Made by a program: the position numbers and the translations under genes
Part shown: piece by piece, positions 9,426-13,989 of the stretch
How the letters are laid out: every line of letters starts with the position of its first letter
Position numbering within the stretch: the first letter of the stretch is position 1
Notes under the pieces: model-generated
The model's input: only the letters and a program-made list of their open reading frames with translations
Told to the model about the DNA's origin: nothing
Database searches by the model: none
Origin: Octopus sinensis
Lineage: Eukaryota
Direction of reading: 5' to 3'
Assembly (NCBI RefSeq): GCF_006345805.1
Contig: NW_021824099.1
Span: 1-20,001, forward strand
DNA: 20,001 bases

Positions 9426-9589
9426 TCATAAAAATCCTCTTTAAATAACAAAAATAAGATTTTTTACTGTATATAAGTCCAAGTTCCGTCTTAAAAAACC
9501 TGGAAACGACCCCGTTTCATTTATTGCATTTTTGAATTTCGGACTGCTTCAGGTGGTCTTGGGAAGTGACTTTCACTATGATGATAATA

Positions 9590-9690
9590 CAGTGAATACT
9601 CTCAAATTCGCCATTTTTGGTTTTGTCATTTTTTGCAGCGAATTTGAGGAATGGCAAATTTCAGAATATAATCAATAAATTTTGAATGCG
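9590..9690 (-). mobile_element. pogo/Tigger-like DNA transposon 3' end (TIR and subterminal repeats)
   Basis: TA|CAGTGAATACTCTCAAATTCGCCATT at 9590 is the inverted match (24/26) of the end at 13925. It is followed by subterminal GCGAATTTGAGGAATGGCAAATTTCAGAAT, related to the repeats at 13770-13911. Confidence 0.75.
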
Positions 9691-9769
9691 AGTAGAACTG
9701 TTTAATAATTCGAAAATAACCAAAATTGACGTAATTGAAAAAATTAATTTTATTTTAACAAAGAATTAT

Positions 9770-10285
9770 GCTTTTTTATCAAAGTAATATTCCAGTCCCG
9801 TTTGTAGGTGATCCCTGCCTCCAACAACACCCGTACTCTCCTTACATGATCTTTTGATGACCCAAACGTAACCCGGAAACACCTTCTCTTCCTTCTGCAG
9901 AAGAACTCAATCGGAGTGCATTTCTTTATAACCGACCAAAATTCCTCTGCATGGGCCACCTTTTCCTTGAGTGGGTTTCCCAGTTCCTTGCAGAAACGTA
10001 GGAAACCCTGTCCATTCTTCTGCGTCGCCTCCTCGGAAGCAAGGCTGCCAACTGAGGTGTCAGTGTGGAGCATAATCTTCCTTCTGAGTGAGTTCAAACG
10101 TTCCGCTTTCGAACAAGCAATTGCAAACCTCCAGGCTGAGCAGGCATACTCAACCGTCGGAGCAATCACTTGTTGGTAGACCTTGCTAACACAATCTTTC
10201 AGGAGAAAGGGACTCTTCTTTAACAGAGCTTTCAAGACATCCCTCGTTATCTTTCGAAAGGATTGTAGGTTTTTAAACAAAATGT
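9770..10285 (-). mobile_element. LINE (Jockey/I/CR1-like) ORF2 C-terminal fragment
   Basis: GC-richer island. ORF 9750-10280 contains KVYQQVIAPTVEYACSAW...ERLNSLRRKIM, like the post-RT 'lYkxxIRPxlEYaxxvW...LExxQrr' region of APE-type LINEs. Confidence 0.65.
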
Positions 10286-10865
10286 AGTGTACTATTATTA
10301 CAAGCTGTACATTTTTTCTTAGATCAGAGTCCTTTCGAAAAATAACAAGTGATAGATAGGCGAAATCAACGCTTTTGTTGCAGATTATATCAAATTATGT
10401 GTTCAGGAAATATTAGAAATCAATTTGAAAATCTAGTTTAGACTCAATTGAAAATGCAAGTATTTTAATTTAAAATTTATATTTAGGACATTTTAATTGT
10501 CTTTGTTAACGTCCAAAAAAATCAAAATTTGATTTAAAGTTAAGGAACAGCGGTTAGGTGTCGGGCTAGAGTGAATGTAACCGGTTCCCCATACGTATTC
10601 ATCCGCCATGTCACATATTATGTTAATTAGAATTTTTCTCTAATAGGTCAGCTTAGCATCAATAATTTCGTTTTCAAAATTTATGGCATAATCGATCCAG
10701 AATAACACTACCTATTGTAACCTCAAAAAAACTTCAAGGCATTAAAAAACACGAAAAATACATACGATCTTGACGCTTTCAGGATTATAACACAACCGCG
10801 CATTCTAGAAAAATATGATCAAGACAAATTATGTTATGCAAACAAGAAAATCGATTAATAAAATG

Positions 10866-11828
10866 TTAGTTAAGACCAAGTTTCTTTTTCAAAAATCTTG
10901 TTACTATCTTGTATGCATGTTCGTAGATTTTTTGCAATTCGTGTTTGTTTTTATTTATTTGAGATTCCTGATACCGATCCACTAGGGTCGTGCAAATAAC
11001 GACATCTACATCAATCAATCTTACTAACTTCTTATATTGTTGAAAGTGCAAATAGCTCCAACAGCACACGCCTCCATTTCTATATTTTTTATGTCCAAAC
11101 AAGACAGAGATCTTAAAAAATCTTGACTTTGTTGTTCATCGTACATTAAAATCGGTCCATCTGTACGTCCCTGAGCTAAAATAGAGTTTCATTTCTTGCC
11201 ATAATAAAAGTCGTTTGTAGACATTGTGTTTCCCGTAATTAGATTAAAGTCGTCATCATTTTCTTTACATTCGAGCCATTCTGAGATACTTTCACTGTCG
11301 TATTGTGGAATTAGTCTTTGTTCTTTCCCTAAAACAGCCTAAACGTGAATAGTTTGAACAACGATTGAAAGGAACTCTCGAAGAAATCCATCGTAAGCTT
11401 TTTGGGTGATGACGACTGTCCCCGGATCCAGTCCGAGTCCGCCACATGTCCCAATTCTGATTATGAGGGGGTCGACACATTTTGCAAATTTTAAAAGCTT
11501 AAAGAGTTCATAAAGCATGACTGAAGTTGAACTCTCTCCAATCCCGTGCTTAAATATATACAAGTATTACGCTTGCCACGAGGATTGGTCCCGTCATGTA
11601 CATCACATACCGGTCAGATTTGTTAATAATATTATCCAATTCTTGATCGATCCCGAACAAAGTCCTAGAAAGAGAACAAGCATATTTTTTGGCTCGTACT
11701 GAACTCCCGCCAATGCAGACGTACTATTTAGTGGAAATATTTCAGAATACTTTGATGTTCCCGAATGCTTTTTCAAAGTCCATTGTGGAAGCATCAATTC
11801 CAAGGTGGTATAAATTAGTGTTTTTCAT
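10866..11828 (-). CDS. UPP1: Uridine phosphorylase (UPP1/UPP2-type), intact, 6 exons
   Basis: The spliced frame is uninterrupted: [10 protein letters not shown]...FGNIKYVCIGGS..RA...[34 protein letters not shown]...[20 protein letters not shown]...[18 protein letters not shown]...IKNIEMEA...VICTTLVDR...FLKKKLGLN*. Introns are 27, 22, 24, 24 (GC-AG, 11199-11176) and 23 nt. The true start may lie further upstream. UPP1 versus UPP2 cannot be assigned. Confidence 0.95.
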
Positions 11829-12069
11829 TCTATTTTACTGTTATTAAAAATATTCAAATTAAGTGCCGTGATTAAAAAGATTTGATTACCAGAAATGTAT
11901 AATATAAATAATAGTTCAATTTTTTTAATTTAATGGACTTCATTTAAAACAGAAAAAGAAAAAAGGTCAATTTAAAATGCTGAATTAATTAAGGTTAAAT
12001 ATAAAATTGAAAGGATTGAATAAACTAATTATTACGATGTTAATTTTTCATTATCCGCGAGAGATTAGT

Positions 12070-13290
12070 CTCCTCATTTTAGAGGAGGAAGTAGCAACAT
12101 CCCTCTAATATCCTCTGCCTCCAAATCAGTTACGACTCCTTTTCCCCTACTTTTCATATTGTCTTCATACGAACCACTTGCTTTAATTAAGAGATCAATA
12201 AATGAATTTATGCTGTACAGTGAAGACAGGAATGCGGGACACATCAATAGGATTTCGGATGCCAAGACCTCCAAAGGAGACAGGAAGGGAAGCTTGTTTC
12301 CAGCCATGATCGTCGAATTTGATGTTTATGATGCGTTCGGTTGTTTTCCGGAAAAGGACATTAATAGAATGAAGTTGATCATTTTCTAAGAAGCAGGGTG
12401 ACCCCCGTAGCACATGATTTAATTTTTGGATGCCAAGGGCATTTTTGAGCAGGAAAAAGGCTGTATGTGGGTCCAACAAATTAAGACGAACAAAAGTCTT
12501 TTCCAGTAGCATTTCCTTAGTTTCAAGAGCGTCCTTGATTCCACCATCTATCAATGGGCAGCCTAATATCTCCAGACTGATACTAGGCGTAATGGACGGT
12601 CCGGGAATTATCTCACTGAAAGAGGAAACAATAACCTCGAATTCATCACAACGGAACCCAAAATTAATGATTTCACTTTTTGAAGTGCTCAGTATACGAC
12701 CAACGCATTCAAGTCTCGGAATTAGGTCAACAAGCGTCTTGAAGACAGTTTCGGGATGACCTCCGAGGGTGCAGTCATCAAGGTACTAAACATTCAGCGG
12801 GGTTGAGCAGCTATTAGCAATGTGATTAATTCCAAGGCAAAAGAGAACAGGAACCAATAAGTCTCCTTGTTGAACCCCCGAGGACGAGGAAATATGGTAA
12901 GGGCCATAAACGAGGGTGGATGGTTTCGCGTATGAGCTGAAAACATAGTTGTATATTTCGGGACAAAATTCAAGACAGTTCTCCAATATAGAGTCGCGGC
13001 GAATGGTGTTAAATGCATTACGGATGTCCAATTTAACAATAATATAGGGGTATTGTTGTTTATGTGGTTGAATGCACGGATTCCGTGTATTGCAGCTTCA
13101 CAACCTTCTAGGGTACCAACTCCAAGTTGAATAGGGCACATTAGCGGGGTTAATGTGGAGATAACAGCCCTGCATGCCATCTTTGAAGCTAGCCGACGGA
13201 AGACAGATCCAACTGCAATGGGTCGAACACCCCCTCCTTTCTTTTATATTTTCAAGATGACAAGGTATACAATGAGAAATACAATTATCA
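12070..13290 (-). pseudogene. CRE-clade retrotransposon reverse transcriptase fragment (frameshifted, truncated at both ends)
   Basis: Joined frames give KKGGGVRPIAVGSVFRRLASK...PIQLGVG..GCEAAIH...DIRNAFNTI.R...GVQQGD...LFCL...LNV*YLDDCTLGG...LEILGCPL...FLLKN...QASLPVSFGGLGIR, the CRE/SLACS-type RT motifs. Confidence 0.9.
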
Positions 13291-13374
13291 ATCAAAATTG
13301 ACTTTTTTCCTTCGTCAAAAAGTTGTCAAAATTAATCCGCCATTTACTAAAAATTAATCCGCCATTTGGCCCGA

Positions 13375-13925
13375 CAGAGCATTGATAGTCGTAATTTTGG
13401 AAACATCTTGGCATCTTTGAGTTTTCAATTAAAACAGGTTTTAGTTTGTGATTATTTGCACACAACATTACAGATACCCGATCCTTAAAATCTTTATATC
13501 GTCCAAACTGAGTCTTGCAAATACTTTTAGGTAGAATTAGTTTGTAGAAAATCTCTGTTTCATCAAGGTTATAAATTTCATCGAGAGTATAGGACTTGGA
13601 TAAATTTTGAAAATCATTTAAAAATCCTTTGATGTTAACTTTTTATCAGTTTTTATCTGCCCATACAATTTTCTCAGACGGAATTCATGTCTTTTTTCAA
13701 ACTTGAACAAGAACTTTTTAAAAATGTATTACTTATCAATATTTTTTTATTTAAAAATTTAAACAAATTGTGGCGAATTTCAGAATTAGCGAATTTCCAT
13801 TGAAACTAGAATTTTTTTTAAAAAAAGGGCGAATTTAAGAATGGCGAATTTAAGAATGGCGAATTTAAGAATGGCGAATTTAAGAATGGCGAATTTAAGA
13901 ATGGCGAATTTGGGGGTATTCACTG
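13375..13925 (-). mobile_element. pogo/Tigger-like element 5' end with an internally deleted, degenerate DDE-1 transposase
   Basis: The minus-strand TIR CAGTGAATACCCCCAAATTCGCC starts at 13925 with TA at 13926-13927. The broken frame at ~13720-13385 reads FLFKFEKRH...LYGQ...IYNLDETEIFYK...KDRVSVMLCAN..KLKPVLIENSKMPRCF, matching the pogo motifs WLxRFKxRH, IYNxDETGLFY, RxTVxLCAN and IGKSKxPRCF. Confidence 0.86.
13828..13911. repeat. 15-bp subterminal tandem repeat GGCGAATTTAAGAAT (5 copies plus a partial)
   Basis: Exact copies at 13828, 13843, 13858, 13873 and 13888, and a partial at 13903 that runs into the TIR. Confidence 0.95.
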
Positions 13926-13989
13926 TATTTTTTTATTTTGTCATACACGAATAAGCTTGTTACATCGAATTCTCGTAATTCAACATTTT

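Follow-up and report, generated by a model that had tools for sequence, protein, structure and literature searches.

The interval 9590-13925 of the window, that is, of the whole 20,001-nt stretch of DNA analyzed here, is probably a single pogo/Tigger-derived Pack-TIR element, whose interior has been replaced by DNA copied during repair from a uridine phosphorylase (UPP) locus. Its two ends occupy one insertion site, with moderate support on the side of the right flank, and its interior contains host sequence, as is characteristic of Pack-TIRs. The comparison involves two loci from two public records, the window and L001 (VCDQ01003981.1:34821-55310, a contig of the Octopus sinensis assembly), and the features of the window are listed in Table 1.

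Table 1. Features of the candidate Pack-TIR element and its flanks, in window coordinates
Feature	Position	Strand	Remarks
Outer left flank, second half of the X repeat (~L001 9320-9390)	9519-9587	-	77% identity
TA adjoining left TIR (target-site duplication)	9588-9589	.	Read from sequence
Left TIR	9590-9615	+	CAGTGAATACTCTCAAATTCGCCATT; 3' end of element
Left subterminal region	9616-9749	.	Two 15-bp-type units at 9638-9667 (GCGAATTTGAGGAATGGCAAATTTCAGAAT)
LINE B ORF, like the C-terminal part of non-LTR retrotransposon ORF2	9750-10261 (ORF to 10280)	-	Motifs by eye
UPP downstream region	10262-10865	-	93.8% identical to L001
Intact UPP CDS	10866-11828	-	Six exons
UPP exons	11828-11751, 11723-11571, 11548-11363, 11338-11200, 11175-11029, 11005-10866	-	
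UPP introns, in order		-	27, 22, 24, 24 (GC-AG), 23 nt
UPP upstream region	11829-12211	-	383 bp, 91.6% identical to L001
LINE A, non-LTR retrotransposon fragment (RT domain)	12212-13248	-	Weak RVT_1; corresponds to L001 7196-8184, 91.5%
Decayed pogo/Tigger transposase remnant	13249-13770 (also delimited as 13249-13700)	-	Frameshifts and stops; weak Pfam DDE_1 match
Right subterminal repeats	13771-13911	+	5.6 perfect 15-bp units, preceded by two degenerate ones
Right TIR	13900-13925	-	CAGTGAATACCCCCAAATTCGCCATT; 5' end of element in transposase sense
TA adjoining right TIR (target-site duplication)	13926-13927	.	Read from sequence
Outer right flank, first half of the X repeat (~L001 9246-9319)	13928-14002	-	76% identity over aligned bases

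The ends of the element are well defined. The left and right 26-nt TIRs are identical at 24 positions, and their termini start with CAGTG, in agreement with the CAG(T) ends of pogo/Tigger elements. They are the sole matches to the TIR in the window, and none arose in 100 dinucleotide-preserving shuffles. With a TA on both sides, this pair bears out the earlier note on this DNA, which had described matching inverted repeats with TA flanks. A single TA is found at the corresponding point of the uninterrupted repeat in L001, which is a 76-77% identical paralogue and not a true empty allele. No further end of this TIR family was found in the 40 kb of the window and L001, and a scan of metagenome contigs with the TIR pattern gave no matches.

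The motif GGCGAATTT occurs eight times in the window (0.38 expected), and all eight copies lie at the two ends of the element. At the right end, a perfect tandem array of 5.6 15-bp units, GGCGAATTTAAGAAT, spans 13828-13911, its last unit overlapping the TIR. The subterminal units, including those of the form AATGGCGAATTT, are probably transposase-binding sites. Beyond its TIR, the left end has just two degenerate units, oriented like the right-end array and not inverted, before the boundary with the 3' end of LINE B, which lies within 9668-9749. The earlier claim that both ends carry the same subterminal repeats thus holds for the location of the GGCGAATTT copies and fails for the orientation of the left units. 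The shortness of the left end and the "wrong" direction of its two extra units count against the single-element reading.

Both ends of the element lie at one TA target site inside a dispersed repeat, designated X. Joined in silico, the two flanks form one continuous alignment to L001 9246-9390, with a score of 101 versus a shuffle maximum of 56, and the two halves are equally diverged from X. The similarity of the left flank begins exactly at the TA; in blastn searches against X this flank alone has E = 7e-8, and the sequence across the junction has E = 2e-10. The right flank is weaker, with a local score of 38 when taken alone, below the best shuffle (42), and an empirical p of about 0.005 when anchored at the junction. 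X was also considered as a possible 3' tail of LINE A, and this was rejected, as the other LINE A-like tails in the window end near L001 9104. An origin of the window by rearrangement of an ancestral LINE A-X(pogo)-UPP arrangement was also rejected, the flanks being 76-77% identical to X and the shared block 92-94% identical.

The class of the element follows from its CAG(T) TIRs, the TA target-site duplication and, via relatives of the transposase remnant, the DDE_1/HTH domains. The remnant begins where the HTH_Tnp_Tc5 region ends and continues to the region of the second catalytic Asp (...LIDNCISHCIPCHLENIK); about 100 N-terminal residues with the N-terminal domain, and everything past the second catalytic Asp region, are missing. 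Its own DDE_1 match (E = 4e-4, 20.4 bits) is below the Pfam curated cut-off of 22. A word-index search with the remnant produced no relatives, and they were found solely by a full HMMER scan, which retrieved 1457 (best E = 5e-44), the best ones being 54-56% identical. These relatives have DDE_1 and HTH_Tnp_Tc5 domains, with CENP-B_N in one of them, and are named in their sources as Tigger-derived or jerky-like. The minus-strand DDE-1 transposase remnant that had been recognized between the TIRs is upheld by the weak DDE_1 match together with these relatives.

The UPP gene in the interior had been described as intact and intron-containing, and this was confirmed. The six-exon CDS encodes a protein of 280 aa that matches PNP_UDP_1 with E = 2e-21 over profile positions 1-232 of 233. 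It is 36-43% identical to animal UPP1 and UPP2 over 85-100% of the length (over 95% for nearly all matches), and its translation contains GGSxxR, RIGTCGG, QGR, and IEME, which we take to be motifs of the family. Two conserved residues are changed in the window copy (K69M and L160W). Judging from its sequence, UPP in the window is apparently a complete, structurally intact, functional metabolic gene with a likely promoter region, and we infer that this copy works. In the window as a whole, tRNA and Rfam scans gave nothing, and none of ten ORFs had an exact match in the protein collection.

A block of about 3 kb comprising LINE A and UPP is common to the window and L001, with identities of 91.5% and 93.8%. 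Both UPP copies are intact, and all five introns are common to both, while 13 differences in their exons distinguish them. The similarity breaks off precisely at two points, the pogo junction 13248/13249 and 10261/10262, and it does not resume outside either TIR; neither the TIR nor the 15-bp units were found in L001. The gene neighbors are also different: the window copy lies near WASH1 (WAHD, E = 3e-15), Sen54 (E = 5e-10), and an LRR gene, while an ORF similar to Vps26 (below the Pfam cut-off) and an inositol-monophosphatase-family ORF are found in L001. Thus, where the earlier note had set a single-copy, syntenic UPP with no empty site against its own proposal, the opposite was observed, namely a second UPP, devoid of TIRs, in another neighborhood. 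L001 was considered as the window itself or its ortholog, and this was rejected, since they can be aligned over 3 kb only and their gene neighbors differ. An unrelated pogo fragment is present in L001 at 15306-15464, 3.7 kb from its UPP gene.

The LINE A copy in L001 reaches further 5' and retains 1448 bp that are missing from the window, where the 5' side of LINE A is severed by the pogo junction. This marks the window copy as probably the derived one. We infer that both UPP copies reside in one genome and that the copying went from an L001-type locus to the window. In the far-left flank, a 94-bp tandem array and two 60-bp patches match L001 in the same order and orientation. As everything from there up to UPP differs, host genes included, we set this similarity aside as a common repeat and not synteny; it could nevertheless be a trace of synteny, which would speak against the proposed origin.

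These data bear directly on the reading, already offered as an alternative in the earlier note, that two unrelated truncated pogo fragments face each other by chance around UPP and that deletions or rearrangements made the junctions. Repeats are indeed abundant in this region, which has tandem arrays, LINE fragments, and a hAT-like remnant, and they make up 49% of the published dicyemid genome; the left end consists of a TIR and two oddly oriented units only, and L001 too has its unrelated pogo fragment close to UPP. Independent insertions, however, would not yield outer flanks that join as one copy of a paralogous repeat with equal divergence of both halves, and the similarity to L001 would be expected to resume beyond each fragment, which it does not. 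Nor does the absence of other ends of this TIR family from both loci suit this reading, which we regard as unlikely.

Of the other segments, LINE A supports the previously noted RT fragment by its weak RVT_1 match at 12212-13248, while the accompanying LINE fragment, LINE B, is without database support. The LINE B ORF had no matches in Pfam or PDB, PDB searches with LINE A also gave none, and we take LINE B to be LINE-like from motifs recognized by eye. Its absence from L001 makes it either a second filler piece or a later insertion; a target-site duplication, or L001 sequence continuing past LINE B, was looked for and not found. LINE B thus needs an additional event, which we count against the proposed origin. 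Microhomology at the junctions can amount to no more than 4 nt (AAAA; 13245-13248) in one case and 1 nt (12211) in the other, both being upper bounds obtained without a pogo consensus.

The single-element origin by repair can be outlined as follows. A pogo/Tigger element would have inserted at one TA inside the X repeat, and a double-strand break or gap would later have arisen inside this resident copy. Repair synthesis may then have changed to the UPP locus as template and returned afterwards, so that the pogo sequence retained would be about 680 bp on the 5' side (TIR, 15-bp array, and transposase remnant) and about 80-160 bp on the 3' side. In this way some 3 kb of the original UPP locus would have been copied in, from within LINE A through the upstream region and the complete UPP gene to a point about 600 bp beyond it, followed by LINE B. 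The predicted outcome is a second structurally intact UPP with its own upstream region in a new neighborhood beside WASH1. The earlier suggestion of a Pack-like, gene-carrying pogo candidate is therefore strengthened by the TIR-less second UPP and by flanks contiguous in the repeat, while the idea of a composite transposon gives way, as the junctions are fitted better by capture during break repair inside a resident pogo copy.

In its explicit form, the composite origin implies that two separate pogo copies flanked the LINE A-UPP-LINE B segment at its original locus and that the use of their outer ends moved everything into X. The same ends would be expected, that is, a TIR pair with a TA on both sides at one target site. 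Transposase may also have been at hand, as a cluster of seven related Tigger-like proteins with at least 90% identity is encoded on contigs of the same assembly as L001. Nevertheless, no pogo ends surround the block in L001, the one locus of parental type that was encountered, and the remnant is just 54-56% identical to the likely active relatives. Further, the pogo-LINE A junction is inside both elements, so that extra deletions are required, whereas one template switch suffices for capture by repair within one pogo copy. We therefore consider movement between two pogo copies improbable.

The host genome of the window appears to be that of a dicyemid parasite, and L001, evidently no octopus DNA, looks like dicyemid contamination in the Octopus sinensis assembly. 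Contaminant contigs also seem to be the source of several RefSeq proteins assigned to Octopus sinensis, which would be dicyemid genes with faulty gene models; among them are a "uridine phosphorylase 1-like" protein of 95 aa and a number of "tigger-derived" and "jerky-like" ones. Such an origin brings in the possibility of a chimeric contig joined via repeats, possibly from two dicyemid genomes or haplotypes in a contaminated host assembly. The finding of a related locus in the octopus assembly fits this, and misjoins are favored by mixed parasite populations and repeat-rich sequence. Misjoins, however, arise within common repeats and not at sharp junctions of unrelated sequences sharing at most 4 nt, and at least two independent ones would be needed to recreate an oriented TIR pair with contiguous outer flanks. 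An assembly artefact is accordingly very unlikely in our view.

Dicyemids have about 5,000 genes and have undergone heavy gene loss (PMC6736024), which makes any route of gene duplication in this group of interest. In the structure described here the original target site is still visible, and a locus of the parental type is available for comparison. Should both UPP genes prove to be expressed, the one in the window might reveal the fate of a captured gene, whether retention or decay. It is highly doubtful that the element can transpose, or could until recently, and that functional UPP copies have been dispersed by it over the dicyemid genome. If it were so, it would mean more pyrimidine-salvage capacity in a urine-dwelling parasite, and an adaptive gene amplification driven by a Pack-TIR in an otherwise extremely reduced animal genome.

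Among known systems, ordinary pogo/Tigger elements and their internally deleted derivatives share with the window element the TA site, the CAGT-type termini and, in its relatives, DDE_1 and Tc5/CENP-B-type domains; in the window, however, the interior is not just lost but swapped for 3.6 kb of foreign DNA. Plant Pack-MULEs and Pack-CACTA elements come from different superfamilies, whose target-site duplications are longer. They are similarly non-autonomous TIR elements with a host-derived interior, but their cargo consists mostly of gene fragments, and they are often present in several copies (PMC8903248). Transposon-mediated gene duplication is known in animals, where whole genes are rarely captured. 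For instance, Ssk-FB4 of Drosophila melanogaster is a complete host gene on a DNA transposon that provides extra functional copies (PMC8277862). Ssk-FB4 is carried by a foldback element (FB4), is multicopy, and is backed by proteomics, whereas the window has a pogo-type shell in one known copy.

The closest counterparts are the animal Pack-TIRs, 115 of 370 of which belong to the TcMariner superfamily (Tan et al. 2021, Nat Commun 12:4280; PMC8277862). Pack-type capture was previously thought to be less known for pogo; as it is documented in animals for this superfamily, the phenomenon is less novel than had been assumed. Gap filling with short microhomology is regarded as the main source of animal Pack-TIRs (PMC8277862). 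As in these elements, host DNA in the window lies between the TIRs of one transposon, with breakpoints in the interior of the latter, and the architecture is consistent with gap filling; a putative parental copy at another locus, and junction microhomology that would be short or absent, may also be in common. The window element differs in its cargo, which comprises a complete, intact gene, about 380 bp of its upstream and 600 bp of its downstream sequence, and retrotransposon fragments, and in its host, which is apparently a dicyemid, the survey of animal Pack-TIRs having covered 100 genomes.

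The interval between the paired pogo/Tigger TIRs (9590-13925), that is, the element, is supported in its structure as one pogo-derived shell holding a LINE A-UPP segment (a retrotransposon fragment plus the uridine phosphorylase gene) copied from another locus, hence as a Pack-TIR, an element with host DNA captured between the TIRs of one DNA transposon. The paired TIRs with TA flanks around UPP, described in the earlier note, were confirmed: the two 26-nt repeats (9590-9615, plus strand, and 13900-13925, minus strand) are identical at 24 of 26 positions, TA lies immediately outside each, and among all inverted pairs that a repeat finder reported for the window they rank first by length. 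The TIR consensus has just two matches in the window and none in 100 dinucleotide-preserving shuffles. The motif GGCGAATTT occurs in eight copies (0.38 expected), every one at one of the two element ends. The right end carries GGCGAATTTAAGAAT in 5.6 perfect tandem copies, and the far poorer left end has, beyond the TIR, two degenerate units (9638-9667), which point the same way as the right-end array instead of mirroring it. The 15-bp subterminal units at 13828-13911 are mutually 100% identical amid an otherwise heavily decayed element, which suggests a recent expansion by slippage or homogenisation.

Features of the window and of the related locus L001, with identities between the two
Feature	Window	L001	Strand	Remarks
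LRR (leucine-rich-repeat) protein gene	~4800-5420		-	left of element
Sen54-like tRNA-splicing endonuclease subunit	6258-6770		-	left of element
WASH1, C-terminal/3' part	7845-8700		+	left of element; WAHD domain E = 3e-15, plus WH2/acidic tail
Left end				short subterminal region and left TIR; closes interval
LINE B ORF	10261 to 9750		-	by eye, C-terminal part of LINE ORF2
UPP downstream sequence				~600 bp, 3' of UPP, before LINE B; identity 93.8%
UPP CDS	11828 to 10866		-	six exons, 280 aa, full PNP_UDP_1 domain; identity 98.5% (exons), 98.3% (introns)
UPP upstream sequence				383 bp, between LINE A fragment and CDS; identity 91.6%
LINE A fragment	13248 to 12212		-	reverse transcriptase, weak RVT_1; starts directly at 13248
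Transposase remnant	13770 to 13249		-	after right TIR and repeat array; frameshifted, many stops
Aligned stretch	13248-12211	7196-8184		identity 91.5%
Aligned stretch	12211-10261	9633-11592		identity 93.8%
Vps26-like ORF		upstream of UPP		below Pfam cut-off
Inositol-monophosphatase-family ORF		downstream of UPP		E = 2e-8

The only Pfam match of the transposase remnant is DDE_1, below threshold; scanning all 1.84 billion representatives with HMMER yielded 1457 relatives. The best of them (54-56% identity) are the Octopus sinensis proteins "tigger transposable element-derived protein 6-like" and "jerky protein homolog-like"; the relatives combine DDE_1 with HTH_Tnp_Tc5, and one has CENP-B_N. The remnant lacks about 100 N-terminal residues, and its last residues are ...LIDNCISHCIPCHLENIK, at which point the closest relative goes on with ILFFPPNST.

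Two stretches of the window align with L001 (VCDQ01003981.1:34821-55310, local coordinates), which therefore holds a second copy of LINE A plus the UPP block; as only these stretches align, L001 was rejected as being the window itself. Neither a TIR nor the 15-bp units of the element were found in L001. Its LINE A reaches at least 310 bp further 5' than the window copy (ORF from 6886), and 1448 bp of L001 (8185-9632) are missing from the window at 12211. Since a truncated retrotransposon cannot regrow, the window LINE A-UPP copy is taken to be the derived one. The similarity stops exactly at the pogo junction (window ...CTTGAAAATAT/AAAAGAAAGGAGGGGG, L001 ...GCGCTAG/AAAAGAAAGGAGGGGG) and also at 10261/10262, the start of LINE B, and is not resumed beyond the TIRs. 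A separate pogo-type transposase fragment (…LNDIRLNLFFPNNSTRLQPLDTGIIK…), for which no matching TIRs were found, lies in L001 at 15306-15464 (minus strand), 3.7 kb downstream of UPP and in the opposite orientation.

The outer left flank of the element resembles L001 9320-9390, with similarity starting exactly at the TA. In L001 this dispersed repeat, X, is located between the LINE A 3' end (~9104) and the UPP block. A single insertion of the element predicts that the right flank resembles the sequence immediately preceding L001 9320, and this was observed. When the two flanks are joined in silico, they align in one piece with L001 9246-9390, junction included (score 101; shuffled flanks reached 56 at best), and the junction is also crossed by blastn (E = 2e-10). 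The right flank alone, anchored at the junction, outscores 99.5% of the 80-mers in the two loci, a moderate, not overwhelming, signal. This is the pattern expected of one insertion at one TA in an X copy. The alternative of the earlier note, two independent truncated pogo copies facing each other, is argued against by the same joined flanks, as they form one alignment to X with equally diverged halves (76% and 77% identity).

The window UPP gene has introns of 27, 22, 24, 24, and 23 nt, and no full-length database protein shares more than 43% identity with its product. Intron 4 (11176-11199) is GC-AG instead of GT-AG, identically in both copies. Both copies are open, have all five introns in common, and show the catalytic motifs. 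Their 13 exonic differences (five synonymous, eight nonsynonymous) are too few to demonstrate relaxed selection. Judged against 60 outgroup proteins, the window copy is derived at K69M (codon 69, 11621-11623; Lys in all 60 and in L001) and at L160W (codon 160, 11298-11300; a conserved Leu, with Leu, Ile, or Val in outgroups), and the L001 copy at one conserved Thr (T241I). Function may be altered or reduced in the window copy.

The neighbor genes of the two UPP copies differ. The inositol-monophosphatase-family ORF is one of the long ORFs present in all six frames of L001 13000-15000, a markedly G+C-rich region unlike its A+T-rich surroundings. The main observation fitting poorly with the Pack-TIR picture is at the far left of the window, where a 94-bp unit in 9.2 tandem copies (1808-2677) is 75-80% related to a shorter L001 array (within 15991-16279), and two patches of ~60 bp beside the arrays (87-88% identity) keep the same order in both loci. 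This similarity would be either a remnant of synteny or a shared repeat, possibly of a satellite-bearing family; we read it as the shared repeat, because all intervening sequence and genes differ. Other repeats in the window are a 119-bp unit in two tandem copies with 92% matching (1221-1458), short LINE A-like 3' tails (941-1099, 2934-3048, and 17590-17741), and ORF fragments at 16392-17377 (minus strand) that by eye resemble a hAT-type transposase in its C-terminal part and have no Pfam match. Further retrotransposon debris occupies 17597-19139 (plus strand) and 18870-19920 (minus strand); one fragment has ~55% protein identity to LINE A, and the overlapping minus-strand element has an ORF with a zinc knuckle, and an endonuclease of the apurinic type that matches Exo_endo_phos weakly.

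Among animals, introns of 22-27 nt have been reported for dicyemids and myxobolid myxozoans only (PMC13644364). Dicyema japonicum inhabits the renal sac of Octopus sinensis, and its genome has a mean intron length of 38 bp and 49% repeats (PMC6736024). A search with one UPP exon retrieved, at 100% identity, a protein of 95 aa named "uridine phosphorylase 1-like [Octopus sinensis]", whose gene lies on a 373-kb unplaced contig in GCA_006345805.1 (VCDQ01003981.1). We infer that the window and this contig are dicyemid DNA, the contig being contamination within the octopus assembly. The RefSeq 95-aa model (L001 10001-10963) omits one exon and takes a 24-nt intron as coding sequence; the true gene encodes 280 aa and has dicyemid-type introns. 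The "tigger-derived" and "jerky-like" proteins are encoded on small contigs; these, as well as the UPP contig, appear to be dicyemid contamination that carries octopus annotation.

LINE B, with no supporting match in Pfam or PDB, is either a second filler piece or a later insertion; a target-site duplication was looked for and not found. At 12216-12227, GTCTTCACTGTA equals the pogo terminus plus TA with one mismatch, followed by CAG, 5 bp from the junction where the window misses the 1448 bp. The site is native LINE A sequence, as L001 has GTCTTTACTGTACAG; a cryptic transposase site is conceivable, but its position is probably a coincidence, since the window would contain ~1.8 matches of this kind by chance alone.

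The capture junctions, inside the transposon and inside LINE A, are sharp, with possible overlaps of no more than 4 nt and 1 nt, and fit template switching during repair, by which the LINE A-UPP segment would be copied into the pogo shell. An origin from two separate pogo copies acting as a composite fits less well, as it needs extra deletions at exactly the junction points. The Pack-like pogo element of the earlier note is supported in its structure (TIRs, a second, TIR-less UPP copy, and joined flanks), while for its origin repair-mediated capture is more likely than composite transposition. Of the 370 animal Pack-TIRs known in 100 genomes, 115 belong to the TcMariner superfamily, and for single-copy Pack-TIRs, gap filling with short microhomology, independent of transposition, is held responsible (PMC8277862).
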